A program made the translations under genes and the position numbers. DNA of 64,000 nucleotides from Macrostomum lignano. Taxonomy: Eukaryota. Shown one piece after another: positions 18,201-61,480 of this stretch. Numbering within the stretch: position 1 is the first letter of the stretch; each line of letters opens with the position of its first letter. The notes beneath the pieces are model-generated. The model was not told the origin of the DNA. It worked only from the letters and a program-made list of their open reading frames with translations, and did not search any database. The stretch covers positions 6,327 to 70,326 of the forward strand of contig NIVC01003907.1 of the NCBI GenBank assembly GCA_002269645.1, given 5' to 3'.

Positions 18201-21200
18201 CGCAGAAGTGGTTGATGGTCGGTACGGATGGTGAAGGGTCGGCCGTGGAAGTAATGTTTTAGACGTGCAGTCGCCCAAACTATAGCCAGAGCTTCGCTCT
18301 CTATGTTTTAATAGTTGGCCTCAGCGGAAGACATGCTGCGTGACACGTATATGACGGGATGGCCATCCTGCGTTGCCACGGCGGCGAGCGCTCCCTTGGA
18401 CGCATCGGTGGTGAGCGTGAGCTCTTTCGTCAGACTGTATGGTTGGAAGACAGGCGCTGACGCAATCTCTATCTTGAGACTCTCGAATGCCCTGGAGCAT
18501 TCATCCGACCACACAAAAGGTATGCCGGCCTTTCTCAGTCTGTTAAGAGGTGCAGTCTCGCCCGCAAAGTTCGGGATCAGCCGCCCAAAAAATGACTATC
18601 CCGAGGAAGTGGGCGAGCTCCGATTTGTTTGCAGGTGCACACACATGACGAATTTTCTCGACCACGCGATCATTGGGCTCTATGCCTGCAGCAGAGATCC
18701 GAAAGCCTAAGAATGAGGCGGAATCGCAATAGCTAATGCAATTTGACTCGTTGATGGTCACGCGCTTTTCAGTGAGCCGCGTCCGGACGGCAGTAAGACG
18801 CTTTTCTAGGGTTGTTTTGTCTGGTGCGTGGACAAGAATGTCGTCCTGGTAGATCAGTAAATCCTTTATGTCCCCTAGAATGGACTCTATTGTTCTTTGA
18901 AAGATAAAAGAGGCGTTTTTCATGCCCATTATCGATTTACTCGATAGAGCCCGCGGGACGTATTGATAACTGACAGATCTCTCGCCGCTTCGTCTAGCTC
19001 AATCTGCCAGTATGCGGAACGCAGGTCGACGGTGGCAAATGTCTTGGCATTCTTTAGTTTCGAGAACATGGTTTCCACGTGTGGGATCGGATGCGAATCT
19101 GATTTGATCTTTGAGTTGACATGCACACTATAGTCTGCGCACATCCGCAGTGATCCATCCTTTTTTTCACCCATACCACGTGGGAAGAATTACTGACTGG
19201 GCCTTCTATTGGTTCGATGACACCTAGTCGGTGAAGACGGTATAGTTCAGCGTTGATCTGGTCTTCCAGGGCCAAGGGAACTGGGCGCGCACGGCAGAAT
19301 GTGGTCGAGCACCATCTTTCAACTCCATTCAGGCCTTGACACCTCTGATGGTGGGCAGGTGCTCCGCAGCTGTGTTGCTGGCTGGTGACTCTGTGTGGAA
19401 GAGACCATCAGAATCGAGGAGGTCCCGACCCAGCAAGCCATACGGTTTAGCGGAAGTCACCACAATGAATTCTGCCGAGTGTAGACGCCCTCGTAGCTCT
19501 ACAGTCGTAGCCATCTTGCCGAGTGACCGCATCACATGCCCGTCAAAAGCCTCTAGGCGTCGGTTGCAGCGTAGAAGTGGTGGCTGGCCCAACTTGGTCC
19601 ACTGCGCGCTCGATAACACGGAGACGGATGCACCCGTATCAACTTGCATCTCTAGCCTTTTGTCATTGATGCGCACTGCTTCGGTCGTGGCTTCGATTGA
19701 GTGTAGGGGGTCGGTTAGATGGAGCACGGTCGTAGGTTGCTCCATGCTTCCTGCTGCGGCTTCCTGCTGCGGCGACGCGTGGGTCGACGCCAACCGGAGA
19801 GACGGCTCAGCGTGCTTGGCTACGCCGATGACCTCGCCCTGCTGTCCTCGACCGTCGAGGGCGCCCAACGACAGCTGGATAGGTTGGTTGCCGTTGCGGC
19901 GAGAGTCGGCCTGGTGGTCAACACGCAGAAGACCGTCGTGCTATGCGTGCCGGACGACACCGAGGCTGCAATCTTCTGCCGAGGCGCTGACGGACAGGCG
20001 AGTGAGCTTCCAAGATGTCAGCAGTTCTTCTACCTCGGCGGTCTGGTTCCCGACGTCCGCGAGGATCTGCGGCGTCGCCGAGGACTTGCCTGGGCTGCCT
20101 TTCGTTCTATAAGGTCAGTCCTGCAGTCCGAGGCCCTACCGGACCGCCAGAGGGCGGCGCTGTTCCAGTCGGTGATCGAGACCGTCCTGTTATACAACGC
20201 CGAGACCTGGACGCTGACAGACTCGCTCGAGGCTCAAGTCGACGCGGCGCACGCTGGCCTGCTGCGCGCCGCCTTCAAGATCGGCAACGAGCGAGTCACC
20301 AACACGGCGCTCTATCATCGCGCCGGCCTGGCCCGTCCTAGCGATCTGCTGCGCCGTCGGCGACTCCAGCTGGCAGGCCACATCATCCGCGCCGAGGCCT
20401 ACTGTCCGAAGCCGGTGCAGGAGGTGCTGCTACTTACGTTGCAGGCACCCTACCGGCGGAGACAGGCGAGGACTCGGCGCTACGTCGACTGTCTGCTGGC
20501 TGACGCCGGCGCCCCGGACTCTGCCGGCGGTGCGGCCTTTGTTCGCGCCCAAGCTTCGAAGCGCGCCATCTGACGCTGCTTTTGCGAACTGACAGCGTAC
20601 TCTGTTGTTGTTGTTGTTGTTGTAGGTTGCGGATCAAGTCTTGTGTCTTCTTCATCAGCTGTGGTGTGATGTACGGGTCGAGAGGCCGCTGATTTGCAGA
20701 CAGCACTAAAGTGGTTCTTTTTTTCCGCACTTAGAACAGATCTTGCCAAAAGCTGGGCATTTTCCTTCAGGATGCGGCTTGTCACAATATCGACAAGCCG
20801 TGATTTTCCGGCAAGTGCCGCCTCTGTCAGGTCGCTGTGACTGAGTATAATGAAGGGTCGAGTCATCGGATTGAACTGTGACAGCAGTCTGCGCGGGTGG
20901 CACCGAGGGGCCTGCTGTCGTTTCCATCTGTTTTAAGACGAACTTGTCAACTTGGGTCATGTTTCGAATGCAGTCTACAATCTCAGAAACGGAGAGCTCA
21001 GTGAGTTGCAATGTCTCAAGCACACGTTGTTGCTTCCGGCCGTCACGAAGTCCGGCGATCAGTGCCATTCGTATCAATTCTTCCAAAGAACTTTGATGCG
21101 TCTTGAGTGAGTCAAATTTGCAATCGGCTGCCGCATGCCGCAATCTGATGACAAAGTCAGTGACTGGCTCAACAGGTAGTTTCTGCATCGTAAAAAAACG

Positions 21201-22430
21201 TGCGCGTTCTGCGATAGTAAGCTTCTCCTTCGGACGCAGATAGGAGGTGAGTGCTGCTTTGATGTCAGTAAACGACAACTCTGTTACAGCGCGCGGTGAT
21301 ATTAGGCTTTGCAGTTTTTCCAATGTAGTCAGTCCACAGCAAGCAAGAAAGTTGTCAGCGATGGTTTTCCTCTCAGTAGTATCGGACCAGCCTTTGGCTC
21401 TAGCAAGCGCTTCAAAGGCAGTTAGCCAGACCTGGGCACGGTCGGGCTTGCATAGCGGTAGTTCGCCCAACGAGGATGGCGACGTCAGTGTTGTGTATCG
21501 AGCTTGGCAGATAACAGTTGTATTTTAACTTAGGAAATAAGATGTAAGCATAGCAGGAATTGAGGCCATAGATATAACTGTAAAGAATCAAGGCTAACAT
21601 TGAAGGAATAAGTAACGGTGTGGGAGCGATTCATAACAAGTAACGGTGAGGGCGATTCTTCAGGGCACAACAATACTTTTAGTAGGCAAAACATACTAGT
21701 GACGAGTATCTTGACAAACACAGGACTCTTTCCAGCCAATCTAAAAGAATTTGTTAACAATGCGGAATCAGACAGAAAGACAGGAAGTGTCAACCCAATA
21801 GATTACTCAGATTTCGTGCTAATTTAAGGCTTGTCACTTGCTGAGAACCCAGCCTGAGAATGCCTGTCCCTCAATGCAATGATAGCGCTCATAAGAGCAA
21901 CTGCCGCCGCATTTCCGCACTCCACCACGCCACCGCAGGAGCTGGTAGTCCGCGAGGCCGACTCCTTTGCCAGCCAGGTCAGCCAGCTGTCCGAGCTGCT
22001 CTTCATCAAGCTAGACAGCCTCCTCACAGCCGACGAAGTTGAACGCGGCCGCGTCCCACCCGACCTGCTGCCCACTGCCGACCTGCTGCGCAAGCAGATG
22101 GCCGGCGAGCCACTGCACGACCCCAACAAGGATCAGCTGATCCCGCGGGGCAAAGCCAACTGGTCCGGCCTGCCGCTCAACGAGTTCCAGCCGCCTGAGC
22201 AGCAGCCGCCCAAGACTCTGCGCTGCGCCACCCTGACCGTGACGGCCAAGACCACCATGGCGCACAACGAGACGGACAAGGCTCGCAGGGAGTTCTACGC
22301 CGCGTTTAAGGAATTCTTCCACGAAGTAATGGAGGAGATCCGACGAGCTGCTGCGGAGGCTGACACCCTCGAGACCAGGTGGTTTGACAACTGGCAGAAG
22401 TCGGTGCAGAGAATTCGAGAGCTCTACTGA
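230..22430 (+). CDS. CCDC180: Coiled-coil domain-containing protein 180 (CFAP76; DUF4455/DUF4456), multi-exon. Exons: 230-742, 1504-1831, 2260-2567, 2975-3152, 3659-3870, 4084-4503, (5325-5429 possible), 7064-7147, 10804-11096, 11577-11933, 12681-13071, 13255-13574, 13782-14058, 14172-14350, 15442-15691, 15897-16241, 21939-22430
   Basis: GT-AG exons with compatible phases. Motifs match vertebrate CCDC180 as recalled: YRQLFEAQVQLTDQL, LHRIVDDEAVQMNQTLLGN, LHLHEPRARRAELDVHNVRAAEL, KLFSEGGNFCPEE, FYRQKGSRPVTRP...TFDQC, YHNSCVIELR, and C-terminal RWFDNWQKSVQRIRELY*. Exons in the low-complexity linker are less certain. Confidence 0.9.
1125..1398 (+). mobile_element. tRNA-derived SINE, copy 1 (degenerate)
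   Basis: Degenerate A box, B box GGTTCGATTCT, central TTGAGCAAGACACTTAACTCTGCATTGC...GGGTGCCAGC block, and a 3' tail shared with copies at 6.6 kb and 12.2 kb. Confidence 0.75.
2699..2950. repeat. ~32-bp minisatellite (TTTGATGTGCCGCCTCGATCCACCTCGAATCC)
   Basis: Tandem degenerate copies in a CCDC180 intron. Confidence 0.85.
4660..5200. repeat. ~22-23-bp minisatellite (CCTCCTGACACACAGTTGTGGCG)
   Basis: Tandem copies in a CCDC180 intron. Confidence 0.9.
6268..6612. repeat. 15-bp minisatellite (GGGGTTGTAGCCTGA)
   Basis: About 23 copies running directly into the SINE head. Confidence 0.95.
6604..6885 (+). mobile_element. tRNA-derived SINE with CORE-like central domain, copy 2
   Basis: A box TAGCCTAGTGG (6611-6621), B box GGTTCGATTCC (~6655-6665), central GTGTCCTTGAGCAAGACACTTAAC...CAGCTGTAAAATGGG, and shared tail CAGCCGTACG...GCTGAGCTGTCGGTTGCAC. 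Confidence 0.8.
7534..9357 (-). CDS. Arrestin-domain-containing (alpha-arrestin/ARRDC-like) protein, 2 exons (9357-8619, 8534-7534), ~579 aa, nested antisense in a CCDC180 intron
   Basis: Arrestin_N motif LSPGEHVFPFACDLPFELPATFTGSYGNVSYLVKV. Arrestin_C motifs LFMPRRAYDIGDNIFV and LTVPRFIPPSGLPNSSIIGVRYWLVF. An 84-bp GT-AG phase-1 intron joins the two ORFs in frame. Q/G-rich tail. Confidence 0.85.
10262..10650. repeat. ~31-bp minisatellite (GAGCGGAGAGGCGGATTCAGGGACTGAGGCT)
   Basis: Tandem copies. Confidence 0.9.
12216..12491 (+). mobile_element. tRNA-derived SINE, copy 3
   Basis: A box TAGCCTAGTGA (12221), B box GGTTCGATTCC (12272-12282), and the same central block and tail as copies 1 and 2. 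Confidence 0.8.
16544..16782 (-). repeat. 3' LTR (239 bp)
   Basis: Matches 21489-21672 apart from 4 substitutions and 49-bp and 6-bp indels. Confidence 0.95.
16900..19740 (-). pseudogene. Retrotransposon pol (aspartic protease, RT, RNase H, integrase) broken by multiple frameshifts
   Basis: VDTGAS (protease); DLRSAYWQI and YQDDILV (RT); TTDASKGALAAV (RNase H); HSG...CPGC, RIHMDW, VSDNAPEF and YYPQANGAAERAVQTVK (integrase), spread over several frames. Confidence 0.9.
19741..20621 (+). mobile_element. 5'-truncated non-LTR retrotransposon (RTE-like) inserted in the gypsy element
   Basis: RT C-terminal half (YADDLALL, YLG, VLLYNAETWTL), stop at 20573, short 3' UTR with ACGCTG/CAGCGT stem, (TTG)n tail, and 9-bp TSD GTAGGTTGC (19732-19740, 20622-20630). 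Confidence 0.92.
20631..21470 (-). pseudogene. Retrotransposon gag with two zinc knuckles; frameshift in an A7 run at ~20716-20724
   Basis: FVIRLRHAAADCKF gag motif. Knuckles CRYCDKPHPEGKC and CSKCGKK|NHFSAVC, the second split across two frames. Confidence 0.85.
21489..21672 (-). repeat. 5' LTR (184 bp)
   Basis: Direct repeat of 16544-16782, adjacent to the gag start. Confidence 0.95.
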
Positions 22431-23298: not shown

Positions 23299-24319
23299 AT
23301 GCGCCCGGTAAGCGCTCTGGCAGCCGTGTTGTTCCTGACACTCGCTGCAGTCCAGCTTATCGGGTGCCAGGCCAGTGCTGGAATAACAAAATGGAGATTC
23401 AGTCCGGGGAGACTCTTCGACTACGAGCCCGCGAAGTCGCTCTCAGCTCAGTCCAAAATCGAGTGCACTGTCGCTGCCACCGGTGACCCCGCTGTGCAGC
23501 TGGTGGCGTTCAACGCCAGCTCCGGCCTGTGCGCTCACTTCAGGTGTCGCCTCGGCCTGAGCCACTGCAGGAAGTGCCGTGCTGCGAACAAGGGAGCTCA
23601 GCGAGTGTGGGTGAGTGACAAAAATCCACTCCTAAAATTCGAGTATTATGTTTGCTAAACCAACCCACTTGTTTTCTGTTGCAGACAGCCGGCAGTGACT
23701 GCTGGACCACCGTGCAGCACAGGGTGTCCGGCTCAGTGGACTTTTACCGCAACTGGACTCAGTACCAGAGCGAGTTCGGCGAGGGACCCGACGGAAACTA
23801 CTGGATCGGTGAGTGCATCCCAGATCTGCTCCATTCGCTTCCTTTTCCAACTCGGACTTCAATGACAAACACCGCCATGACGTCCGCATCTTCCCAGGCC
23901 TGAACTCTCTCCACGCTCTCACTGCTTCTGGTCCTCGGAAGCTGAGGATCCTGATGAAGGCGTGGAACGACTCTGAGCACTGGGCTGAGTACTCCAGCTT
24001 CTCCGTGGGTCCCGAGTCGGACAACTACCGGCTGAGCGTGTCCGGCTTCTCCGGCAGCGCCGGCGTCGGCAACTCGATGTCTCGCAACAATGGCCGCCAA
24101 TTCTCGACGAGAGACGCTGATCACGACACCTATCACCAAAACTGTGCGGACAGGTTTTTCGGAGCCTGGTGGTTCTCAGATTGCTCTGATTCATTCCCCA
24201 ATGGACAATACCGAGATTTCAGTGCGGCCATTGGAGGCCCATTTGCTGAAGGCGTCATCTGGCGGTATCCCTTCGGCTCCTACTACTCACTGAAAGAATT
24301 TGAAATGCTAATTCTTTAA
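23299..24319 (+). CDS. Secreted fibrinogen-related domain protein 1 (signal peptide + PAN-like domain + FBG). Exons 23299-23610, 23685-23808, 23898-24319; 285 aa
   Basis: FBG motifs [48 protein letters not shown]. Canonical GT-AG introns in phases 0 and 1. Hydrophobic N-terminus. Confidence 0.9.
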
Positions 24320-24705
24320 AACTGGGCCTTTTGAGCATCGAGATCAATTGACTCTGTTGAATACACACTGTCCTAGTGATTAGGCAATGCTATCAGAAAA
24401 AAATTAATAACTTTATTTTGTGAGAAGCGATCAATATATGACAGAAAAACTTTGCAAAAAAACTTGTTTGCGGTCAAGCGCATCACCAGAATCCTTTGAT
24501 TTGTCTTAACCTAATTATAAATACATGTATCGATTAGTATAAGTAATGCGGTTTTTTAGTGACATCTTGACATCTAAAAGGACAACTAAGTAAAGACATG
24601 AAATCTAGAAGCTATTGCTGATAAATCGACTACTTATTAACAAATAGGAGCCACCTGCAAGGCATGAAACTTAAAACTTGGTACCCCTGCCGGCGTGACC
24701 CCCTT

Positions 24706-25871
24706 TAGGGATGTTCGGGTTCGGGTTTCGGGTCGGGTTTTGGCACCGGGTTCGGGGTTCGGGGTAGGCGTTTGGGGTAGGCATTTGGGTCGGGTTCGGG
24801 GTTCGGGGTAGTGTGTTCGGTTTCGGGTTTCGGGTCGGGTTTTGGCACCGGGTTCGGGGTTCGGGGTAGGCGTTTGGGGTAGGCATTTGGGTCGGGTTCG
24901 GGGTTCGGGGTAGTGTGTTCGGTTTCGGGTTTCGGGTCGGGTTTTGGTACCGGGTTCGGGGTTTTCGGGTTTTTTATATTTTTACGAGTTGAAACGAAAT
25001 TAAGCGTAAACTGAGTATTTCCAGGTTTTTTTCGCGTATATTTAATTTTTTAAATCGTTATAAATATCATTCTAGTACGCTACCTTGCTTTATAATGCGG
25101 AACAACTTACACAAATGATAAATTAAGGCTTTGTCAAGAATCCGTTTAGAAAAAAGTTGATTTTGTAATACTATAAGCCTTCTCCAAGCAAAAGAAGACC
25201 AAATTGGTGCGTTTGCATTGCTTGCATCATACTGAGCTGAGGAATGTCTTGACTAATATTTTTATTATGCAATCATATTATTCAAAAATTCATTGACAGA
25301 ATCTTTAATAGTTCGCAGTGCCTCTATTTTCGAATCTGCTGATTCCAAATTCTGAGGCAAGTCTCTGGGTTAAAATGAAAAAATGGACTATATCAATGTG
25401 ATTTTCTAAATTTAGTTGAATTTTGACAGTCACTATGACTCAACAATTAAAAACTGTATTATGATATGATGTTGTTTATCTGAAATAGGGGTGTTCGGGG
25501 TTCGGGGTCGGTTCGGGTCGGGTTCGGGTTCGGTAGGGTGTTCGGGTCGGGTTCGGGTTCGGTAGGGTGTTCGGGTCGGGTTCGGGTTCGGTAGGGTGTT
25601 CGGGTCGGGTTCGGGTTCGGTAGGGTGTTCGGGTCGGGTTCGGGTTCGGTAGGGTGTTCGGGTCGGGTTCGGGTTCGGTAGGGTGTTCGGGTCGGGTTCG
25701 GGTTCGGTAGGGTGTTCGGGTCGGGTTCGGGTTCGGTAGGGTGTTCGGGTCGGGTTCGGGTTCGGTAGGGTGTTCGGGTCGGGTTCGGGTTCGGTAGGGT
25801 GTTCGGGTCGGGTTCGGGGTTCGGCGTTAGAGCTACCCGAACCCGAAAAAATGGAAAGCCGAACACCCCTA
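24706..25871. mobile_element. Non-autonomous hAT-like DNA transposon with GGGTTC-rich subterminal arrays
   Basis: TIRs TAGGGATGTTCGG (24706) and CCGAACACCCCTA (25859-25871). 8-bp TSD ACCCCCTT / ACCCACTT (7/8 match). A second left-type TIR TAGGGGTGTTCGG lies internally at 25486. Confidence 0.7.
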
Positions 25872-26344
25872 ACCCACTTCTAGGCGTGTTGAGCCCTAGG
25901 GTGACTGGAACCCGTTCTACGAGTATAACAGCAAAGAGCACAAGTGGAAAAATTTCCATTTGAAGACTTGCTTTGAAGATATTCCCTACATCTATACTTC
26001 TTGCTTCGACTTACTGCTAAGGAGGCAGTTTTGACTATTGAAGGAGTATCTTAGCACAATTCAGCGAGCGTCAACGACTGCTTTCTTTCGCTTCCCAGGG
26101 TGATTCAAATTTCTTTCATGGATCAGAACAAAAGCTGCCAGGAAGCGAAGCCAGCAACAGCCTACTCCCTTTGGCTTTTGTTTCTCTTTGTATCTGCTGT
26201 CCATTGTTTCCCGGTTCCGGCAAGGCATCCGTCAGCAATCGCTATTTTTAGTAACGTTTGCAGCTTCTCAACCTGGCTCGTTCAGTGCTCCAAGCAAAAT
26301 CTTTTTCGCCTCAGCTGCTAGCAAATTTCTGCTCTATTATTCAA

Positions 26345-26600
26345 TCTACAGCAATCCACAGCAATCCACAGGAATCCACAGCAAAATACAGCAATCTACA
26401 GCAATCTACAGCAATCCACAGCAATCCACAGCAATCCAAAGAAATCCAAAGAAATCCACAGCGATCCACAGCAATCCACAGAAATCCACAAAAATCCACA
26501 GCTATCACAGCAATCCACAGCAATCCAAAGTAATCCACAGCAATCCACAGCAATCCACAGAAATCCACAGCAATCCACAGAAATCCACAGAAATCCACAT
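26345..26600. repeat. 10-bp repeat (CAGCAATCCA)
   Basis: Degenerate tandem copies. Confidence 0.9.
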
Positions 26601-27253
26601 CAACATACTTCTGGGCTTCCTCACAGAGCACTTCCGAAGCTTAAGCTATAGATGTTAAATAGGCAGGTTGCTGGTCATTATTTTGGGGGAAAAATGGATA
26701 TGAACTTCAAATTTTGTTTCAAGGGACGCCCTGATCCACTGGTCACATTAGTCACTACAGTTGATGCAGTCGTAGCGCAGGATGAACGCGCATTATCTCT
26801 GAAGCCTTTCAAAAAACTTCAAGAAGATATTATCGACTTTAGATTTTTATAGTAGGTCAGAAAAAGTCAACTTTTTATGTGATCTTACCGCTTTATTTAA
26901 GTGTGCACTTTCAAACGTCTTGAGAGAACAAAAAATCTTAACAAAAATTTCATTCTTATCAAAGAAACAGTTACAAGTTTAAAAGACTTTTTTTAAACTC
27001 AGGTTTTACAACTTCCGATTTTATCTATACGAGCCAGATTGAGGGTGCAGACAGAAAACAGGTTTACATCCAATTAAAATATTACATGTAAGATTGTTTT
27101 CATGTAAGTATTACATGTAAGAATGTAAGAATATTTCTGATGTTTTTGTTTCGCTCAAGAGCCATCATTTCGCTCAAAAAAAGTAAATAAATAATTAAAT
27201 AGACGATAATCACTGGTCCTCATTGATACATTTTCCAAAATCACCCACAGTAT

Positions 27254-28264
27254 CTAAAAGATCAGCATTTCAAACTTTTTCAATGAGTATTCCCTGTCGA
27301 AGGGATATTTCCAAAGAATTCCCAGATTAGGTGCACCACCAATGGCTGAAGCGGAGTCCTTGTACTCTCCGTTCGGGTTGGTGTCAAAACAGTTGGAGAA
27401 CCACCAGGCACTGACGAACCTCTCGGCGCAATTGTAGGTAGCTTGAACGTCATGGTCGGCGTCCTTGGTGGTGAACTGGAAGCCGTTGCTTCTGGCCAAC
27501 GAGTCGCCGATGCCGGCGCTGCCGGAGAAGCCGGACACACTCAGCCGGTAGTTGTCCGACTCGGGACCCACGGAGAAGCTGGAGTACTCAGCCCAGTGCT
27601 CAGAGTCGTTCCAGGTGGTCATTAAAATGACCGGTTTTCGAGGACCAGAAGCAGTGAGCTTGTGAAGAGTGTTCAGGCCTGGGAAGTTGAAAAGTTGAAC
27701 ATAGTTCCAATTATCCAAATTTAATTACAGAATATTAAACAGCATTCAACCCCACCGATCCAGTAGTTTCCGTCGGGTCCCTCGCCGAACTCGCTCTGGT
27801 ACTGAGTCCAGTTGCGGTAAAAGTCCACTGAGCCGGACACCCTGTGCTGCACGGTGGTCCAGCAGTCACTGCCGGCTGTCTGCAATGTAAAAAGTTTTTG
27901 CAAAAGTGCCAATTCAGACTATGGGGATGCAAAAGCTGCTGAACACAGGACTCACCCACACTTGATGATCTCCTTTGTTCGCATTGCGGCCCTTCCTGCA
28001 GTGGCTCAGGCCCAGGCGACACCTGAAGTGAGCGCACAGGCCGGAGCTGGCGTTGAACGCCACCAGCTGCACAGCGGGGTCCGAGTCCGCAGTCGCCATG
28101 CAGCTGATGTCGCTCCGTGCCCAAAACGAAGAAGCAGCCTCATATTCGGCAAGGCCGTCTCGACTCAGCCGCCAAGTTCTCTCAGCTGAGACAACTCCGG
28201 CCACGCGGGGATTTAGAGCTGCGAACAGCAGGATCATCCATTTAAATCCGTTTGTCGAGCACAT
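27254..28264 (-). CDS. Secreted fibrinogen-related domain protein 2. Exons 28264-27956, 27879-27756, 27678-27254; ~285 aa
   Basis: Same 3-exon structure, phases and motifs as paralog 1. The start could be either of two Met codons. Confidence 0.9.
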
Positions 28265-28876
28265 AGAGATAATTTATTGGTCTTCGATTTTCGATCTGTA
28301 TCGATTTATGTAAAAATAGCCGGTCTGCAGCTGTGTCTCAGCCCAGTGGCTCCTCAACGGAAAGGTTCTGATGATTTCGAAGTCAGGTAGAGTCGAGGTG
28401 ATCTTTCAGCGACAATTTTACCCATCGGCAGTTCTGGCCATTCCGCAGACACCTGAGCTCACACAAGCGCGCCAATACTGCACGCAGGCACGGCACTCAT
28501 ATGCGCTCACACAGGCTGTACAGCAACCTTGACTTACTAATCATCAAGCATGCACACCCTCTGTGCTTTTAGGGCTTTGCCCACATGAGTGTGTGAACCG
28601 CACGACAGCCCTGGCCTCGTATTAAATGCAACGATCAGTATGAAAATTCCTTTAAAACTCTTAGAACTACAGGTGTACTCGGCGTTTCTCTGAGACTCTG
28701 GCGCCCCAGAATCTGTCGTCCACGCTACATATGTTCACGCCCCGGCTCAAAGTCGCGCCTTGTAACACTGTCTTTCGTTAATTATGTTCCCTTTTAAGAT
28801 CTCAAAACAGCTGTCTGATGTATTTTGGTTTGCTTGTTGTTGGCTTGTTGCTCAAGCAGCCTCGAGAAAATGGATG

Positions 28877-28933
28877 GCAGACTGTTGTAACACCGTGCAA
28901 CAGAGGACGTCCAGCTCAGCGAGCTTTCAATGA
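28877..28933 (+). pseudogene. Relic of a fibrinogen-related exon 2
   Basis: Translates ADCCNTVQQRTSSSASFQ*, versus (G)[19 protein letters not shown] in paralog 4. In-frame stop. Confidence 0.45.
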
Positions 28934-28972
28934 ACCCTGCAACTGCTCAATAATGCCAAGCCCTAGCCTCTA

Positions 28973-29671
28973 AGTAGAATGCATGAGGGGGCTTCTGGGA
29001 CAAAATTTTTCACGTCCTCCATAATCCCATTAAATCCATCCATATTATTATGAAATTTTTTTTCAAAGGGTAAGGACCCTGGGTTAGGGGATTTAAAGTT
29101 TTAGGGATGTGGTAGCACGTTGCGGATTGAATGTGGGGAGAAGAATGCAGATTATTTTCTGATTGTTTCGAAGATGCTATGGGTGGATGTCAGTGGATTA
29201 TGTAGGACACCTGTTATGCTCTGATTCTGTCATGGAGGAAGGAGGATTAGTTAGGAGGATTATAGATGACGTTTTGTGAGCGAGTAGGACACCTGTTATG
29301 CTCTGATTCAGGGATAATATGGATGGATTTAATGGGATTATGTTCGAAGTTTTCGGAGCAAGTAGGACACCTGTTATGCTCTGATTCTGTCGGGAACAAT
29401 ATGGATGGATTTAATGGGATTATGGAGGACGTTTTGTGAGCGAGTGCGACCCCCCCCCCGTTTTTTTCTGATTCTGTCAGGGATAATATGGATGGATTTA
29501 GGATTATGTTCGAAGTTTTCGAACTTCGAACTTCGAACATAATCCTCGAAAGGGGGGAGCAAGTGCGACCCCCCTTTTTTCTGATTCTGTCGGGGATAAT
29601 ATGGATGGATTTAATGGGATTATGGAGGACGTGAAAAATTTTGTCCCAGAAGCCCCCTCATGCATTCTACT
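28973..29671. mobile_element. Foldback/MITE-like element with ~75-bp terminal inverted repeats
   Basis: AGTAGAATGCATGAGGGGGCTTCTGGGACAAAATTTTTCACGTCCTCCATAATCCC... at the left end is the reverse complement of the right end. Internal degenerate repeats. TSD imperfect (CCCTAGCCT / CCCTAGTCT, offset). Confidence 0.7.
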
Positions 29672-30354
29672 CCCCTAGTCTATATTTTTATACATTGTTA
29701 TCCAGACACACAAGATCTGCTTGACTGAGTATTTGACTGAGACTACTGTGCATTGAACTACCAACACAACTGAACCTTCGAAATGCAACTCAAATAATAT
29801 AAAACCCCACGTTCAAGTGTGTCACGTCAAATCGGTAACGAATTTGCGAGAATTTTCTACTTGAGCAGCATGTCTGAATGCAAATGAATGAACATTCAAG
29901 AGTCTGAGACTTGACTTTATCGTCTTAACAGGTGTTGGACAGCTAAACTTGTCGAGTTTGTAATTGCGTGTAACGATGGAGAGGAAAAAGCCAGTTTATT
30001 TACCGGCAATATGCAATAAACAAAAGGATAGATTCTAGTTTTGGTTGAAGATCGCGTAGCTACGTGCGTAATCCCACTGGAGGATTTCCAAGAAACAGTC
30101 GAGCAAGCAAATGACAAAACCCAGTCAGAAAGGAGAAACTGAAAATCAGGCACTCATTGTGCGTAGTACTGGATAAACCTCATCGACAGACCTGTGTAAA
30201 ACCTGATTACGTGCTCTGCTCTGAGTTTGACGATGACGTCTACAAAATATAATCCAATAAGTAAACTGTAAGTGAAAAAAACTTGACACGAATATTTATA
30301 AGTCCATAAAGTCGATTAACATCGACAGAATTAACTTTTGCAAACTTTGTTGCC

Positions 30355-31375
30355 TCAAAGGATGAGCATTTCGATCTCTTTTAGCGAGTAGTACGGACCG
30401 AACGGCGACTTCCAGATCACACCTTGAGCGCGCGGGCCACCAATGGCTGACGAGAAATCGCGGTACTGTCCGTTCGGGTGCGTGTTGTGGCAGTCAGCGA
30501 ACCACCAGGCTCCGAAGTAGCGCGAGCCGCAGTTGTCGGAGTGAACGTCGTGGTCGGCGTCCTTGGTGGTGAACTGGAAGTCGTTGCTTCTGGCCAGCGA
30601 GTCGCCGATGCCGGCGCTGCCGGAGAAGCCGGACACGCTCAGCCGGTAGTTGTCAGATTCGGGACCCACGGAGAAGCTGGAGTACTCAGCCCAGTGCTCA
30701 GAGTCGTTCCAGGCCTTCATCAGAATCCTCAGCTTCCGAGGACCAGAAGCAGTGAGATCGTGAAGAGTGTTTAGACCTACATTGAGAAAGATAAATAAAA
30801 TCATTATGATGTCACTTAGCTAAAAATTGCAGACAAAGAAGCAATGCCAATAAAAATCTTATAGAACCATACAAATGGTTACCTATCCAGTAGTTTCCGT
30901 CGGGTCCCTCGCCGAACTCGCTCTGGTACTGAGTCCAGCCGCGGTAAAAGTCCACTGAGCCGGACACCCTGTGCTGCACGGTGGTCCAGCAGTCACTGCT
31001 GATGGTCTGAAAGGGGAAAAACTATAAAAGTCAAAATTAAAATTTGACTCCATACGAGAGCACAGTGAGAAGACTTACATTTCGATTCAGCCACACTATT
31101 TCAGCCCCACTGTTTACATCGCGGCACTTCCTGAAGCTGCTCAGGCATCGGTAGTGAGTGCACTGGCGAGAGCTGGAGTTGAATGCCACCAGCTGCACTG
31201 CAGAGTCGTGGCTTGCAGTACCAGTACATTGGATCTTGGACTGAGCCGTGACCGACCTTAGTGACTCATAGTTAGAGAGGCGGTCACAGCTTGACCACCA
31301 GCTTGTCAACAAAGCATCGCTGAATGTCAGCGAAGTTTCTGCAGCCAGCAGCAGTAAGCAAGTCAAGTAGTTCAT
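30355..31375 (-). CDS. Secreted fibrinogen-related domain protein 3. Exons 31375-31079, 31006-30883, 30776-30355; 280 aa
   Basis: Same structure, with a more divergent exon 1 ([29 protein letters not shown]). Confidence 0.9.
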
Positions 31376-32379
31376 TGGAGATATTGTATCTTTGTCTGAA
31401 TTTTGGCGAAAGACAGTGGCATGCAGAATAAGAATCAGAAAGCCGTAAGTATTAAGTAACAGTGCACTAACGACTATGATGCCTCAGCTACTTCACCAAA
31501 CGAATGAAAAGCCTTTGTCTTGGCACAACTTACGTTTTATGAAAACTCTTTGCTTACGTAGTAGGCTTATAGCAGGTTCCGATTAAGCTTCCCATGTGTC
31601 AGGGTGGCTTCCTCGCAGGGCCTCATTAGTTTTATAACTTTCCCGCCCAAAGCAGACAGATGCGTGGTCTTTTTTGACGGAGGTGATGCTGCTGGAAGAT
31701 GCAGGGTTAGGAGGCTTTAGCTAGAGCCCATTAAGGTAGACTTTGGGTATAGAAAAGCTAAAGAAACTGTCATTTGAAACTCACTCAGTTTTTTACTGCC
31801 ACAGAAGCACCGAAATTCTGCGGCAGTAGCTAATTGGCAATTGCGCATTAATTTTTAACGGCACGAGCAGAGTGGCTGCATGCGATGCTGTTGAATTACC
31901 TCAAAAATACAACGAGGTACTTTCAAGAGCTTCCATGTGCTCTTTCTCAGCATCCATCATACTTCGTAGTTGAAACATTGGGATGCATGATGAACTTAGT
32001 GCGGCAATGTCAAGAAAAAACTACAATTTTCCCAAAGAGATCCCAAAGCTCATTAGTGACATGAACGCAGGGGTAGTGCAGAGTCTTTAACAGCCGCTGG
32101 AATTCTTGGATGAAGGCTCGCATTTGTTCCACGGCCTGTGCTGAGTACCCCCCGCGCCTTGCCGCTGTGTCCCTTCCGGGACAGCCCTGCAGCTAAGAGG
32201 CTGAGTAGCTTTATGTCGCGCCGATGTTCCATGGGTTCGATTCGGCAATGTGCAGGCTGCATTGGTTCGGATTTAATGAACGGACGAGGATATAGAGGTG
32301 TACAGAAGACCTGTGATTGCTGTTGATTTTAAGCGCGCTCCATTTATGCTGTCGGGGTCAATACTTTGATCGAGTAAGG

Positions 32380-32650
32380 ACTAGTTGGCAGGTAAAGGCT
32401 GGGCCTCTTGCTTGTCGGAGGAAGGACTAGTTGGCAGGTAAGTGCTGAGCCTCTTGCTAGTCGGAGGAAGGTCTAGTTGGCAGGTAAGTGCTGAGCCTCT
32501 TGCTAGTCGGAGGAAGGTCTAGTTGGCAGGTAAGTGCTGAGCCTCTTGCTAGTCGGAGGAAGGTCTAGTTGGCAGGTAAGTGCTGAGCCTCTTGCTAGTC
32601 GGAGGAAGGACTAGTTGGCAGGTAAGTGCTGAGCCTCTTTCTAGTCGGAA
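32380..32650. repeat. 46-bp tandem repeat (CTAGTTGGCAGGTAAGTGCTGAGCCTCTTGCTAGTCGGAGGAAGG[A/T])
   Basis: About 5-6 near-identical copies with no spacers. Confidence 0.9.
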
Positions 32651-32848
32651 ACGCGATTTCGAGACAGCTGGTTTGGTGAGCCAGTTCGCACAGGCTTGTA
32701 GATTAGCCTATCTCCGGATCAGCTTATTTATACCTTTACAGATTCTCCCTGTTTGTCTCTCGCTGTTCTCTCTGAGCTATAAAACCCAGATGCTCGCCGC
32801 GACGATATCGAAACGTAAACTGTACACAGGGCTAATAAGCCCTCTCGA

Positions 32849-32850
<2 letters not shown>

Positions 32851-32900
<50 letters not shown>
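32851..32900. repeat. (AT)n microsatellite
   Basis: About 25 AT units. Confidence 0.95.
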
Positions 32901-32902
<2 letters not shown>

Positions 32903-33337
32903 CAGTCAGTCAGAATCAGCCAGCGTGGAGGGGGGTGGGTGAGATGGGCCTGGGCTAAATCAGCGTACATAGCGAACTATATAAAGCACGTTCATTAAAT
33001 CACGCAATGCAAGGAAAATCAATACATTAATAGTCTACCTCCGAAACACTGATCATCTGACAGGAGTGGGAGGCCAGAGTATTATGTGATTGATCTGTAT
33101 GCTTTCAGGCCCGGCAAGCCTCTCATCAAGTTGAAGCCTTCAGAATTTAGGCTATACGAGTGTGTTAGAGGGAAGGAAAATAATCTTCTTACTCTATAAT
33201 TTTGAAGCCAACTAACAATAAAACACTAACTACCAAATTTAGTCAAGTTCTATTCAAATAGTAATAGCCTTATTTAACCATTACCGATTCATTGTTTATC
33301 ATAGTCTCATAGAACAAGCAACAGCAGATCTGTTTCT

Positions 33338-34370
33338 TTAGAGAACAAGCATTTCGATCTCTTTCAGCGAGTAGTACGGACCGAACGGCGACTTCCAGAT
33401 TATACCCTGGGCCCTCGGGCCATCAATGGCTGACGAGAAATCGCGGTACTGTCCGTTCGGGTGCGTGTTGTGGCAGTCAGCGAACCACCAGGCTCCGAAG
33501 TAGCGCGAGCCGCAGTTGTCGGAGTGAACGTCGTGGTCGGCGTCCTTGGTGGTGAACTGGAAGTCGTTGCTTCTGGCCAGCGAGTCGCCGATGCCGGCGC
33601 TGCCGGAGAAGCCGGACACGCTCAGCCGGTAGTTGTCAGACTCGGGACCCACGGAGAAGCTGGAGTACTCAGCCCAGTGCTCAGAGTCGTTCCACGCCTT
33701 CATCAGAATCCTCAGCTTCCGAGGACCAGAAGCAGTGAGATCGTGGAGAGAGTTCAGGCCTGAGATGGAAATGTGAAGATTAACACGAAGCGGAATACTA
33801 GCTAAACAAAGGCATGTAATGTAGCATGTAAATTTATATTTTTTTTAAGTTCAAAGCTACCGATCCAGTAGTTTCCGTCGGGTCCCTCGCCGAACTCGCT
33901 CTGGTACTGAGTCCAGCCGCGGTAAAAGTCCACTGAGCCGGACACCCTGTGCTGCACGGTGATGCAGCAGTCACTGCCGGCTGTCTGCAATGTAAAAAGA
34001 TTTTTTGGAAAAGTGCCAATTCAGACTATGTTAATGCAAATTCTGCTGACACAGGACTCACCCACACTCGCTGAGCTCCCTTGTTCGCATTGCGGCACTT
34101 CCTGCAGTGTCTCAGGTCCAGGCGACACCTGAAGTGAGCGCACAGGCCGGAGCTGGCGTTGAACGCCACCAGCTGCACAGCGGAGTCACTTCTGGCAGCG
34201 GCAGTGCACTGGATTTCAGAAGAAACTTTCAGCGACCTCAAGGCCTCATAGTCAAAGAAGCTGTCGCGGCTTGAGCTCCACTTTCTTTCGGACGACCCGG
34301 CGTGGATTTCAAAGTACTGGATTGAAAGAATCAGAACACAGATGATATGCTTGATTTCGATAGAATCCAT
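33338..34370 (-). CDS. Secreted fibrinogen-related domain protein 4. Exons 34370-34062, 33984-33861, 33759-33338; 284 aa
   Basis: Same structure. Exon 3 is nearly identical to that of paralog 3. Confidence 0.9.
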
Positions 34371-37300
34371 CGGCAGTAACTCTTAGAGTTGAAGAAGTGA
34401 GACCTCGTGATTTCGGCCTGCTTAGTCTTGGGGTAGGTTAGTCTCCAGGGTGCTTTTTTATGCAAAAAATGTCATAAATAGTTGTTTAAGTATAAAGCGA
34501 ACGTTATCGATCGAACTGCAACTAATGGACGTTTTTAAATGCCTGTTTTTATCAAAGCTTCAGTTTCTATGCAACAATGCAAAGATTTTACTGACATTGC
34601 GAAGATACGCAGAATAAAGGTAAAACCCCATCGTCAACGGCCTGATGGGAGATATTTACGCGATTACGCGATTTTTACTGTTGTAAAAGTGACATCTCTA
34701 AAATCGATATGCTGCTTTTAGCTTTTTCAAAGCTCTGCCCAAGGTCCGACTGGGGTGAACTGTAGCTAGCGCTCCAGCTGGTTTGAACAATGAGTATGCA
34801 TAGCAACAAGACGGGCCACTCAGCATTGAATGAATAAATGCCTATGGGCTATGGCACTACTCTTAAATCTAGTAGCAGGCTCACTTAAAAAATGCGTAAA
34901 GGGTCGTAGGTAGTCCAGACGGCAGATTCTATATAATCTAGATGTGTCCCTCCATCTTTCGCTAATGTATTTATAGGCTGCCACTGAGGCCCCGAAAACC
35001 CCGCCGGTGATTGGGCCACAGACACTAGGGGTACTGCTAATGCTTGAGAGAAGCAGAAGCTTTAGTTTATGGTCTTAACCCCGGGGTTTTCGCGCCAGGC
35101 GGCTGGAATGGCACATCTCAGATAATATACATGTAGAATCTGTAATCGAGACTGGGTATTTGCTGTCTATGGTCTTAAAATCGGTATGCATATACATGTA
35201 CGTGTTACGTCTGGTGCATTTGAATAGAAGCTTACAAAACACTGTTGCGGAAAATCTTCGAGTCATGAACAGACCCAGACCACTGCGCAGCTGTAAGCTC
35301 AGAAAGCTGTATCTATCATCACAGACACTAGGGGGACATTAATCGAATGGTACCCCTAGTTTCGTCTATATTGTAGACCGGGCTGGTTTTGCGATGCTGC
35401 CTACCAAATCTGAGTATATGAGCGTATTGCGGGCTAGCTTTTAAAGACCGCAGACTCCATAGACAGAGCTTTCTGCTGTTGCGTTGAATACAAATTGTTT
35501 TTCTTCACACTAAGCTAGACCACAAACAATCAAGGTTGAAATCCTATACATAAAAGTAGATTATAAGACCATATGGACATCACGATGGACATCTCTACCT
35601 CATTTTGAAACTAATAATAGACAAGCATGCGCTTCAAATTGGACACCCAGGCTTTAATCTAAAGCCACTTCTCCCCATACGAGTAATTTTCAAAGGCTAT
35701 AGATCCTGTACCTAGTACCTAGTGGCTAGACTCAACGCGGTTTTTTGATAAATAAAATTTTCTGATGCATGCGTATGCAAGTAGTGTGTGCAAGCTTTCT
35801 TCTTAGCCTACACTAATTCTTTTGGGATCAATAACATATTTTTTTATGAAAACATCAGATTTGACGGTTTTGCTTCTCACTTAAACTATTTGCATTTAGT
35901 TAGTTATGATTTAGCGCCGCTTTCGGTGCTTGATATCTAAAAGAGGCATTTTTTGCAAGCTTGTTCCAAATTTATAAATAAAGTTCCGTCGTCAAGCGTC
36001 CGTCTGAAAGGTCGCACGGTGTAAAGGGTTTTGGGGTCTGGAGTTCAGCCAAAGTACATTTTTAGAGGCTTGTTCGATTCACACCCATCAGATCAAGTTA
36101 CCATGTCACAGATATAGTGTGTAGGAGAAAGAGTGTGAGTAGAAAGTCAGGGCCAATGTACGCCATGTGTGAGCGTGTGCATGAGTGCATGTATCCGCGT
36201 GCTTGCCTCAGAATCGCCAGAATGGCAATTAATCAGCAAATTTTTGTCCAACATGTAGAACCATCCTGCGAATATTTATTATCTTATCTATTCGAACCCG
36301 TTTGATGGAAATCTACAGCATCTCATTCAGACATTCAATCAGCTGCATTTTCCAGGACCGAGTCTGAACATCCGCCATGTTCTCCGTGGCCCCTTTTTGA
36401 TGCTGTACTCGTAACCATCAGTCATCATCGTCTTCAAGTTTGGTCAAACTCAGTTTAAAGGAACTGCGAGTTTAGTAAAAAAACAAATTTGATCATTGAA
36501 GTTTTCTAGTTTTCCTTTGTCTACGCAAATTAAAGCCAACTACATATATTCAACAATATTAATATCCATGGACCGACGTATGGACCAACATGGAAAACTT
36601 TTTAATTTCAAATTCTATTCAGATTTTTTTATTTAAAACTGTGCAATAAAAGTAAAATTGTTTATAACAAAATACTATGCATTTTTAGCATAGCCTAGAG
36701 TATAACTTGACTACTTGCTTTATGCAGTAAAGTAATTTAAAATTTATAAAAATTATATTAAGTTGTTTGCACGTGATTTTGACTCTTCGTGTATTTTTCA
36801 GACAATTAATTCTACTACTACTTTTTAGTCGTCCGTCCCGATTAGGGCCTATAAAAATCATCGTCGGCACTTTAAGGCTTTTCATATAACCAATTCCAGA
36901 ACCAGAATCGGTTCGGATCTTCCAAAAAAACAGCAGTAGAAGTATTTAATTCTGTTGAATGTTTGACTGCCTTAACAACCTCACTTAGCACAATTTTTCT
37001 TTTTCTTCCTGGCGATTGTCATTCAATAATAAAAACTTTATAGCATTTATCTCCCTCTAGTTAAGTTATGGAGACAAACAGTTATACTTCACAAATTGGT
37101 TCTGGTTTAGGAACCAGAAGCAATATGAAAAGGCCCTTTGTGTCCTTAGTACTAAGTACCTTAGTCGGCCTGCCCTTAGTCTATTTATATAGGGCCTAAT
37201 TAAATTCTTAATTGATAATGTAATAATATGAATTTAGCATAAATAAAATTTTATATTGAGCCGCTTAAGCAGCATCTTAAATAATGTGGAATCAGAATGA

Positions 37301-53501: not shown

Positions 53502-53540
<39 letters not shown>

Positions 53541-60200: not shown

Positions 60201-61205
60201 AGAATTGCCTGGGAAGGTTAGCGAATTCACTCAGCTACAATCTGAAGTGTTCTGTGAGCCTTTTTTGAAAGCTTCACGGTGGATGCGTTGGAGCCCTTCA
60301 GGGCAGGCATTCTTTTTACCTTTCCAGCGTTCTGAGCAGTGGTCTCCGATCCCCACACACCCTGAGCAGTGGTCTCCGATCCCCATTCAGTCTGAGCAGT
60401 GGTATCCAATCCCTATTCAGTCTGAGCAGTGGTCTCCGATCCCCACACACCCTGAGCAGGTCTCCGATCCCCATTCACTCTGAGCAGTGGTCTCCGATCC
60501 CACACACCCTGAGCAGTGGTCTCCGATCCCCATTCAGTCTGAGCAGTGGTCTCCGATCCCCACACACCCTGAGCAGGTCTCCGATCCCCATTCACTCTGA
60601 GCAGTGGTCTCCGATCCCCACACACCCTGAGCAGTGGTCTCCGATCCCCACACACCCTGAGCAGTGGTCTCCGATCCCCATTCAGTCTGAGCAGTGGTCT
60701 CCGATCCCCACACACCCTGAGCAGTGGTCTCCGATCCCCATTCAGTCTGAGCAGTGGTCTCCGATCCCCACACACCCTGAGCAGTGGTCTCCGATCCCCA
60801 TTCAGTCTGAGCAGTGGTCTCCGATCCCCACACACCCTGAGCAGTGGTCTCCGATCCCCATTCAGTCTGAGCAGTGGTCTCCGATCCCCACACACCCTGA
60901 GCAGTGGTCTCCGATCCCCATTCAGTCTGAGCAGTGGTCTCTGATCCCCATTCACCCTGAGCAGTGATCTCACCCAGAAGAGTTTTCCGTAGAAGCCGGT
61001 GAATCTCCGGTGGGTCGCCGCGGCGCCGCCCAGCCTCTGTCGGATGAAGTCAGGGTTGTCGATGTTCACGATGGCCTCGTCCAAGATGCCCATTACGATC
61101 TGGCCGTGCAGCGCCAGGTCGCCGTTGTCCCGGATATTGTCCGACAGCTCCAGCTTGCTGAACTTCAGGAACATCGCCTGCAGGTCTTGGTTGCTCTTGA
61201 ATAGA
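57231..61205 (-). CDS. Globin, neuroglobin-like (exon 2 61205-60974, exon 3 57368-57231; exon 1 not located)
   Basis: CD1 Phe (LQAMFLKF), distal His (LALHGQIVMG), proximal His (AATHRRF), and FW|AMEQPFLEAVRITLADRF. Introns at phase 2 after helix B and phase 0 in helix G, matching the conserved B12.2/G7.0 positions. Confidence 0.88.
57985..59911. repeat. 20-bp minisatellite (AGTGAGGCTCTGTGGGTG[T/C]C)
   Basis: About 96 copies in globin intron 2. Confidence 0.97.
60331..60968. repeat. 30-bp minisatellite (CTGAGCAGTGGTCTCCGATCCCCA[CACACC/TTCAGT])
   Basis: Two alternating variants abutting the globin splice donor. Confidence 0.95.
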
Positions 61206-61239
61206 CTGGGGATGGGGGAGGTAAGAAGTTGGGTGGGTG

Positions 61240-61480
61240 CCAAACACCCATCTCGCTCCACCAACACCCATCTCACTCCACAAACACCCATCTCACTCCA
61301 AAAACACCCATCTCACTCCACAAACACCCATCTCACTCCACAAACACCCGCCTCACTCCACAAAAACCCGCCTCACTCCACATACACCCATCTCACTCCA
61401 AAAACACCCATCTCACTCCAAAAACACCCATCTCACTCCAAAAGCACCCATCTCACTCCACAAACACCCATCTCACTCAC
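61240..61480. repeat. 20-bp minisatellite (CACCCATCTCACTCCACAAA)
   Basis: Tandem copies just upstream of the globin acceptor. Confidence 0.9.

Follow-up and report, generated by a model that had tools for sequence, protein, structure and literature searches.

The locus at 23299-34370 of a 64,000-nucleotide stretch of the flatworm Macrostomum lignano (contig NIVC01003907.1; the whole stretch is referred to here as the window) raises the question of what kind of fibrinogen-related protein is encoded when the first subdomain of the fibrinogen (FBG) domain is missing, and what has come to stand in its place. Four intact paralogous genes of three exons each, designated g1 to g4, are found there, with products of 280-285 amino acids (aa). 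Considered as a whole, the locus is probably a cluster of four genes for secreted fibrinogen-related domain proteins (FReDs) in which a PAN-like module precedes FBG subdomains B and P, with a core maintained by gene conversion and with diversified recognition. In invertebrates, FReDs count among the chief recognition molecules that have diversified, and to our knowledge almost nothing is known of those in free-living flatworms.

Pfam family PF00147 (Fibrinogen_C) matches all four proteins with 148-157 bits (cut-off 22; E = 1e-43 to 1e-45), and in each the match begins at profile position 39-44 of 221. Coverage of profile positions 40-218 of 221 is common to the window genes and to all 8 of the other family members tested, and the late start recurs in members that are merely ~30-45% identical. 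Sequence matches in the Protein Data Bank (PDB) are to ficolin-1 and ficolin-2 (E 1e-37, ~40% identity), ANGPTL2, the angiopoietins and MFAP4, and these alignments start at g1 residue 109-110, opposite residue 44 of the ficolin chain (the Trp of the 'GGGW' motif). Because the Pfam matches start at 39-44 and the PDB alignments at ficolin residue 44, the absence of FBG subdomain A is real, and the claim of an earlier note on this DNA, that the FBG domain starts nearly at a WTTVQHR motif without its N-terminal subdomain, is borne out by the Pfam and ficolin alignments alike. Subdomain A is absent together with its disulfide, and subdomains B and P are orthodox. An AlphaFold2 model of mature g1 (predicted local distance difference test score (pLDDT) 81; predicted template modelling score 0.71) superposes on the B and P body of ficolin and ANGPTL2 with a root-mean-square deviation (rmsd) of 2.3 Å over ~181 residues (Foldseek E ~1e-20), and the ANGPTL2 FBG domain is the closest structural match of the full model. 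The Ca2+-site motif D218-A-D220-H-D222, which by its sequence is predicted to bind Ca2+, and the P-subdomain cysteine pair C228/C241 are kept in g1-g4 and align with their ficolin equivalents, and the equivalent of Tyr283 is also retained. At residue 242, the position of the ficolin pocket His, which follows the second Cys, g1-g4 carry S/F/H/H, so that His is kept in g3 and g4 only. The position of M-ficolin Y271, the acetyl-pocket Tyr, could be placed because PDB entry 2WNP is the Y271F mutant; it falls at residue 261 and is occupied by F/P/R/R. No collagen-like domain was seen in g1-g4 (no Gly-X-Y repeats and no PF01391 match), nor was an immunoglobulin superfamily (IgSF) domain found, Pfam listing PF00147 alone for the four proteins and the fold predicted for the exon-1 domain being alpha/beta and PAN-like, not Ig.

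The gene models behind these comparisons were built by hand from a list of open reading frames (ORFs) and the DNA and were then checked by script. Gene g1 lies on the + strand, convergent with g2, and g2 to g4 form a tandem on the - strand, with the following exons:

23299-23610, + strand: g1 exon 1, predicted signal peptide (~aa 1-27) followed by the putative PAN/apple-like Cys module and Cys-rich linker (aa 28-104)
23685-23808, + strand: g1 exon 2, opening part of FBG subdomain B (...NYWIG), entered in phase 0 and left in phase 1; PF00147 match starting at profile position 40
23898-24319, + strand: g1 exon 3, remaining FBG subdomains B and P, stop codon
27956-28264, - strand: g2 exon 1, predicted signal peptide and putative PAN-like module; KGR for 'KCR' (Cys lost)
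27756-27879, - strand: g2 exon 2, FBG start
27254-27678, - strand: g2 exon 3, FBG subdomains B and P, stop codon
31079-31375, - strand: g3 exon 1, predicted signal peptide and putative PAN-like module, the most divergent of the four
30883-31006, - strand: g3 exon 2, FBG start
30355-30776, - strand: g3 exon 3, FBG subdomains B and P, stop codon
34062-34370, - strand: g4 exon 1, predicted signal peptide and putative PAN-like module
33861-33984, - strand: g4 exon 2, FBG start; DCCITVQHR variant
33338-33759, - strand: g4 exon 3, FBG subdomains B and P, stop codon

The proteins are of 285 (g1), 285 (g2), 280 (g3) and 284 aa (g4). All 8 introns have GT...AG borders, measure 72-106 nucleotides (nt) and lie in phases 0 and 1, and the spliced coding sequences, of 843-858 nt, are free of internal stops in all four genes. 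Exon 1 of g1 was defined by its ATG, a hydrophobic h-region and a GTGAGT donor; the exon 1 donor of g3 is GTAAGT, 4 codons further 3'. Exon 3 of g1 encodes the DADHD Ca2+-site motif, the C228-C241 pair and the variable pocket residues. The four paralogs and their three-exon plan are thus as the earlier note had them, with GT-AG splice sites and clean frames, and the exon-1 cysteine motif that it gave holds with trivial deviations (the first Cys of g2 follows S rather than E/Q, and the spacing after 'RC' is 6 residues, not 4). By tblastn, no fifth copy of the gene is present in the 64-kb window. A pseudogene cluster was ruled out by the intact frames and splice sites and by the ratio of nonsynonymous to synonymous divergence (dN/dS) of the P subdomain (0.13-0.28). 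An overlooked exon for subdomain A was likewise ruled out, the introns being only 72-106 nt long and exon 1 beginning with the signal peptide. A departure within FBG was noted in g4 exon 2, where 33959-33967 (- strand) encodes DCCITVQHR in place of the DCWTTVQHR of all other family members, the near-invariant FBG Trp being changed to Cys (TGG to TGC) and the Thr to Ile.

The domain encoded by exon 1 has ~77 residues after the hydrophobic signal-like segment and ends exactly at the phase-0 intron. It was modelled alone by AlphaFold2 from an alignment of 19 sequences that included members 25-32% identical, giving pLDDT 80-92 over residues 11-60 and a topology of strands (E) and a helix (H) at E6-8, E15-22, H26-34, E41-45, E50-56 and E74-76, the core elements of which are reproduced in the full-length g1 model. 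About 30 of its top 32 Foldseek matches in the PDB are PAN/apple modules, and there are no FBG chains in the top 50. Among the PAN/apple matches are plasminogen 4dur (probability 0.96), the Sarcocystis lectin SML-2 (probability 0.97, template modelling (TM) score 0.56), TgMIC4 apple-5, HGF NK1, the Eimeria PAN domain 1hky, FXI and prekallikrein; the list also has the PAN domain of a Colletotrichum copper oxidase and, at rank 49, a MANEC domain, which is PAN-like. For comparison at the sequence level, a PAN profile was assembled from the PAN region of a Patiria protein with 6 close relatives, domains from Pomacea, and the sequences of plasminogen, HGF and FXI; searched against the PDB, this profile retrieves FXI, HGF, plasminogen and microneme lectins at E 1e-24 to 3e-4. 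When the exon-1 domain was aligned to it with hhalign, 36-37 columns were matched (E 0.004-0.0006) in a register that places C29 on PAN C1, A33 on C2, L41 on C3, F44 on the conserved Phe and C51 on C4. The score was 22.9; 300 PAN profiles with shuffled columns averaged 9.5 (standard deviation 2.1) and went no higher than 19.0, and the reversed PAN profile scored 11.2. Against single Patiria or Pomacea PAN sequences, hhalign gave E 0.2-0.4 and short alignments in the right register. Within the family C29, L41 and C51 are invariant and A33 is near-invariant. The outer pair C29/C51 (C56/C78 in g1) aligns to PAN C1/C4 and would form the corresponding bond, while the positions of the inner PAN C2-C3 disulfide are Ala and Leu here, so that there is no inner pair. 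These results make it likely that the exon-1 domain is best described as PAN/apple-like, with the outer disulfide kept and the inner one replaced by Ala/Leu. The earlier note had proposed an outer pair kept and an inner pair lost to A/V; the pattern stands, but the alignment gives Ala/Leu as the replacement.

Between this module and FBG lies a Cys-rich linker, and in g1 six cysteines precede the FBG Trp (C56, C78, C83, C90, C93 and C110). C56 and C78 are invariant across the family, the family member P0028 loses C83/C90 jointly and C228/C241 jointly, and an additional pair, C205/C243, is gained together in 4 of 4 cases. The simplest pairing is probably C56-C78, C83-C90 and C93-C110, the last of which would staple the linker to the start of FBG. 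The sequons NAS, NWT and NDS are conserved, and the products are predicted to be secreted glycoproteins of ~28 kDa.

Comparison of the four genes by genomic alignment and by region-wise Nei-Gojobori estimates of synonymous divergence (dS) revealed that they are mosaics. In the first 50 codons synonymous changes have reached saturation (dS 1.8-2.3), as they have, the g3-g4 pair excepted, in the P-subdomain part of exon 3 (0.7-1.7). Values of dS are 0.1-0.2 over the 3' half of exon 1 when g1, g2 and g4 are compared with one another, 0-0.09 in exon 2, and 0.07-0.36 across the 45 codons that open exon 3. The gene cores (23480-24100, 27480-28080, 30580-31190 and 33560-34190) are 97-100% identical at the nucleotide level, the identical part being the 3' half of exon 1, exon 2 and approximately the first 150 nt of exon 3, and this identity stops at the exon borders. 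Exon 2 of g1 and exon 2 of g2 have 100% nucleotide identity. Introns 1 and 2 are unalignable (30-50%), except for intron 1 of g2 and g4 (~85%), and an exon 3 tract of ~240 nt (in g3, the 3' part) is 100% identical between g3 and g4 only; from these pair-specific tracts, recent DNA exchange is indicated. Among codons with the same amino acid in the four genes there is a run of 34 with identical third positions (permutation p ~1.5e-4), and the GC content of third codon positions (GC3) rises from 0.56-0.66 in the ends that are not homogenised to 0.73-0.81 in the tracts that are, the one specific to g3 and g4 among them. A core that has stayed near-identical is explained most economically, and most likely, by gene conversion that is GC-biased and acts on short tracts within exons. 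At the protein level, 13 proteins of the main subfamily are invariant over residues ~62-200, and the variable parts are the signal/N-terminus and the P-subdomain patches 205-212, 223-233, 239-246, 251-264 and 268-275, which take in the two pocket positions equivalent to the ficolin His and M-ficolin Tyr271. The genes are nevertheless under constraint, since P-subdomain dN/dS is 0.13-0.28.

From these features a working arrangement for the proteins can be proposed. Each would consist of a signal peptide, a PAN/apple-like module of ~55 residues (strand-strand-helix-strand-strand), a Cys-rich linker ending in ...VW, and FBG subdomains B and P. The linker probably forms two further disulfides, one of them to C110 directly before the FBG Trp, and the PAN-like module would cap the face that normally lies under subdomain A, provide a further site for oligomerisation or for the binding of protein or glycan, or both. 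The B and P body, with its Ca2+ site and P disulfide, would present a ligand pocket with paralog-specific lining residues, and the proteins would act as soluble, Ca2+-dependent recognition or lectin-like molecules of diversified specificity. In this arrangement the scaffold would be held near-identical by conversion, and the signal/N-terminal and pocket-coding ends would diverge freely. A secreted, Ca2+-dependent recognition or lectin-like role with paralog-specific ligands may be inferred, and SML-2 and TgMIC4, which are among the closest structural matches of the exon-1 domain, are galactose-binding lectins according to their match descriptions. Specificity for N-acetylglucosamine (GlcNAc) or acetyl groups is not predicted because the ficolin acetyl-binding Tyr is not kept, and classical acetyl-group lectin activity is doubtful from the residues found in the pocket.

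A number of results weigh against a reading of g1-g4 as recognition proteins with a PAN-like module and a core kept by conversion. For the exon-1 domain, a Pfam search with 15 members at E <= 10 returned no PAN-clan model and no meaningful family, a PDB profile search with the domain alignment gave chance matches only (ribosomal eL40 and hepatitis C virus NS5B), the Foldseek matches all have E >= 0.049 with TM scores of 0.42-0.56 and none is significant singly, the hhalign probability against the PAN profile is only 8%, and the linker (mature residues 57-80) is of low confidence in the AlphaFold2 models. In the pocket, the ficolin Tyr is replaced throughout and the His is found in g3 and g4 only, and g4, having lost the near-invariant Trp, may be impaired in function or may be an assembly or allelic oddity. 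Because no Pfam PAN match and no significant Foldseek match were obtained, 'PAN-like' denotes a fold-level inference and not demonstrated membership. The degenerate PAN/apple fold that had been suggested earlier is upheld by the Foldseek list and by the hhalign score in excess of shuffled profiles, but not by Pfam, nor by the best Foldseek E of 0.049. The same statistics, non-significant in Pfam, the PDB and Foldseek alike, could be taken to mean that exon 1 encodes a lineage-specific Cys-rich module unrelated to PAN, its likeness being convergent or an AlphaFold2 artefact; the alignment is shallow (19 sequences from a single species, effective number of sequences 3.3), overall pLDDT of the domain model is 75.6, and the domain is found in M. 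lignano only. This is judged improbable, in view of the gathering of ~30 of the top 32 matches in one fold family that ranges from plasminogen, HGF and FXI to apicomplexan lectins and a fungal oxidase, of the independent sequence-profile signal in the correct Cys register, of the conserved Ala and Leu precisely at the inner-disulfide positions, and of the PAN-then-FBG order known in other invertebrates. That exon 1 is instead a highly divergent subdomain A (a helix with Cys1 and a hairpin with Cys2) of an ordinary, fast-evolving full FBG domain is less probable still, and would require a Cys-rich insertion of ~25 residues before the GGGW strand. Subdomain A and the PAN core do share a generic helix and hairpin with a helix-to-strand disulfide, and when the full model is compared by Foldseek with ANGPTL2, ficolin and FIBCD1, some of the alignments cross the exon-1 domain in order over 236-249 columns; these, however, have an rmsd of ~9 Å compared with 2.3 Å for the 181-column B and P core, and their TM is scarcely higher. 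The only hint of a subdomain-A remnant is an hhalign alignment of the domain plus the FBG start to a subdomain-A profile, which places 'QRVW-TAGSDCW' on 'VYCDM-TDGGGW' at E 0.023 and owes most of its score to the WTVQ(H/R)R part. The exon-1 domain itself matches that profile at the null level (score 8.3, E 0.43-0.61, 1-2 columns), so that this comparison lends no support to the divergent subdomain A named in the earlier note as the alternative; the isolated domain model draws PAN/apple matches and not one FBG chain in its top 50, two additional N-terminal strands and a fifth strand yield the five-strand sheet of PAN, and the Cys spacing (C1, +4, +12, ~+22) fits plasminogen PAN, as checked through the PDB search with the PAN profile.

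The conversion and recognition parts of this reading also have their competitors. Selection at the nucleotide or messenger RNA level (on RNA structure, a small-RNA target or codon preference), rather than conversion, could hold the core near-identical, and identity that halts at exon borders with unalignable introns between is unusual for contiguous conversion tracts. There is only a modest chance of this, given that dS is 0 over 124 nt as against >1.6 elsewhere in the same genes, that the pair-specific tracts (intron 1 of g2 and g4 at 85%, 240 nt of g3 and g4 at 100%) point to recent DNA exchange, and that GC3 is raised exactly in the homogenised tracts, as fits GC-biased conversion. As to function, the proteins might be neither immune nor mucus lectins and might serve a reproductive or seminal-fluid, an adhesive or extracellular matrix, or an angiopoietin-like signalling role. 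The Tyr and His of the canonical acetyl-binding pocket have not been conserved, structurally the FBG domain of ANGPTL2 is the closest match, and rapid divergence with copy-number expansion is also typical of reproductive proteins. A role of this kind is a real though lesser possibility, since sequence similarity is highest to ficolins, the Ca2+ site is kept, variability is clustered around the pocket as in recognition FReDs, and the PAN/apple modules of SML-2 and TgMIC4, among the closest structures, belong to galactose lectins.

Set beside known systems, the M. lignano proteins resemble ficolins, tachylectin-5A and other invertebrate FReD lectins in the DxDxD Ca2+ motif, the P disulfide and the WW/NG motifs, and in being small and predicted to be secreted. 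Unlike ficolins, they have no subdomain A (profile positions 1-39, with the first disulfide) and no collagen-like or coiled-coil stalk, and they differ from the acetyl-group-binding FBG lectins (ficolins, tachylectin-5A) in the F/P/R/R at the Y271 position and the pocket His confined to g3 and g4. With the PAN/apple modules of plasminogen (PAp), HGF (N), FXI and prekallikrein (apple), SML-2, TgMIC4 and EtMIC5, the exon-1 domain shares a predicted topology of five strands and one helix, the C1-C4 spacing and a conserved 'x-A-F-x' strand after the C3 position; it departs from them in having Ala/Leu for C2-C3, a beta3-beta4 hairpin shorter by 2 residues, and a Cys-rich tail (C83/C90/C93). Snail FREPs, which are known to be diversified, offer a parallel in their large lineage-specific expansion, constant/variable mosaic and signs of gene conversion, but they join IgSF to FBG, whereas the M. 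lignano proteins have no IgSF domain, no interceding coiled-coil and nothing that points to somatic diversification. The stability of B and P alone is suggested by PDB entry 1FZD (fibrinogen-420 alphaEC, 201 residues), in which the N-terminal segment is lacking and residue 6 aligns with g1 residue 110. That truncation reportedly arose by proteolysis during crystallisation; here, by contrast, it is genome-encoded and family-wide.

A PAN/apple module combined with FBG is in itself known, from Biomphalaria FREP1 (Bg179), Lottia FReDs and four C. gigas genes (PMC7588048). In the Patiria miniata 'MFAP4-like' protein P0046, PAN_1 is found at 47-112 and a complete FBG at 130-344, and the Pomacea 'ficolin-1-B-like' protein P0048 has two PAN modules and EB modules ahead of a complete FBG; in both, FBG covers profile positions 2-220. 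These mollusc and echinoderm proteins and those of M. lignano have in common the N-terminal PAN-type module, the C-terminal FBG, secretion (predicted in M. lignano) and an expanded FReD repertoire. The former, however, carry a PAN_1 domain that Pfam recognises, with both disulfides, then a spacer and a complete FBG; the latter have a PAN-like module that is invisible to Pfam, lacks the inner disulfide and abuts FBG from profile position 40. The novelty lies in an FBG domain that has lost subdomain A and has a degenerate PAN-like module set directly against subdomain B, an architecture that is undescribed although the sequences are already in databases. The earlier suggestion of an undescribed family is therefore right for the architecture and wrong in that PAN with FBG is known from molluscs and a sea star and the proteins are already in UniProt; to call the genes the best candidate for a new system was too strong, as they belong to the well-known FReD family with a new architecture. 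The M. lignano family is an architectural variant of FReD and not a new kind of system. In the literature, no paper on such FReDs in Macrostomum or in other flatworms was found, and a search for FReDs lacking subdomain A was uninformative.

The family extends well beyond the window. The closest database proteins are all from M. lignano, one of which (P0004) is 100% identical to g1 residues 36-285, and at least 34 M. lignano clusters (90% identity) match at E <= 1e-47, named in UniProt only as 'Fibrinogen C-terminal domain-containing protein'. The expansion, which had been described as local, is thus genome-wide in this species. An exhaustive HMMER search of 1.84 billion representative proteins with a profile of the exon-1 domain only (E <= 1e-3) gave 17 matches, all 17 with a truncated FBG directly after, and the divergent matches whose source was looked up were all from M. 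lignano. The domain is so far known in this architecture and this species only, and other Macrostomum may be missing from the database. A divergent paralog (P0059, ~30% identical; NIVC01000725.1 of assembly GCA_002269645.1) has an intron after '...LW' in the same position and phase, the second intron being absent, and because intron 1 is kept in this way the boundary between the exon-1 domain and FBG is an old exon boundary. At the P0059 locus (10290-10612), intron 1 is nearly all a tandem repeat of ~38 bp (GCAGCACCGCATCAATATGCGTGCACGAAAT...), and a partial second FBG fragment lies ~1.2 kb upstream (8557-8871). Many UniProt models of the family in M. lignano (among them P0001, P0002, P0003, P0020, P0052 and P0053) are tandem fusions, truncations, retroelement-ORF chimeras or intron read-throughs; one of these models includes a translated intron 2 of g1 type, and annotation of the family is unreliable.

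The surroundings of the cluster are eukaryotic in character, with gene GC content near 50%, short introns and many minisatellites, and the whole window is unusually rich in tandem repeats. In the spacers of the FBG cluster, tandem repeats lie at 24712-25824, 26342-26603, 29202-29424 and 32372-32649, and directly downstream of the cluster an AT-rich block (36000-40000, GC 26-35%) departs from the ~50% GC of the gene-bearing parts. Immediately upstream are the exons of a long coiled-coil gene (1500-22430, + strand) with DUF4455 at 4045-4674 (E 1e-32) and DUF4456 at 15852-16253 (E 9e-26), domains which we take to mark a CCDC180-like protein. An arrestin-domain gene (7534-9357, - strand; Arrestin_N E 1e-16, Arrestin_C E 1e-10), whose C-terminal ORF is long and rich in Q, P and G, is apparently nested inside an intron of this + strand gene. 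Retroelement fragments occupy 19329-21470 on both strands: an aspartyl protease of gag type (E 1e-11), a gag-like ORF whose end resembles a CCHC motif, and part of a reverse transcriptase (E 1e-5, which does not reach the Pfam cut-off). Minisatellites were found at 42336-43619 (52/184 bp x 21), 46241-48298 (24 bp x 86), 49890-50798 (22 bp x 41) and 57981-59912 (20 bp x 97 copies, 95% identity, strong GC skew). The 975-aa open frame at 51303-54230 (+ strand) is extremely Q/P/H/A-rich and lies in a region of 57-65% GC where both strands carry long ORFs; it may be either an artefact of composition or a transcription-factor-like coding exon of low complexity. An ORF at 60413-61291 (- strand) with a globin match (PF00042, E 5e-7, residues 30-96) continues in frame into a 30-bp minisatellite (60332-60971, 21.5 copies) of 'LNGDRRPLLRV' units, and is probably a globin exon abutting a repeat rather than a real fusion.

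More speculatively, the PAN-like module may have taken over both the place and the role of subdomain A, giving a new composite recognition domain in which a constant scaffold and a variable pocket are maintained through exon-restricted conversion, and making the M. lignano family an innate-recognition counterpart of snail FREPs; this fuller reading is put forward tentatively. A family that has dropped subdomain A and joined a degenerate PAN-like module to the B and P body would mean that the FBG fold can withstand the exchange of an entire subdomain. At ~260 residues it also offers a compact protein for structural studies and glycan-binding assays, in a flatworm that is genetically tractable. 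With near-identical exon cores, unrelated introns and saturated ends, the four genes also provide a clean natural case of short-tract conversion set against diversification. Even if the function should prove ordinary, better annotation would follow for dozens of M. lignano proteins now named only as 'Fibrinogen C-terminal domain-containing'.

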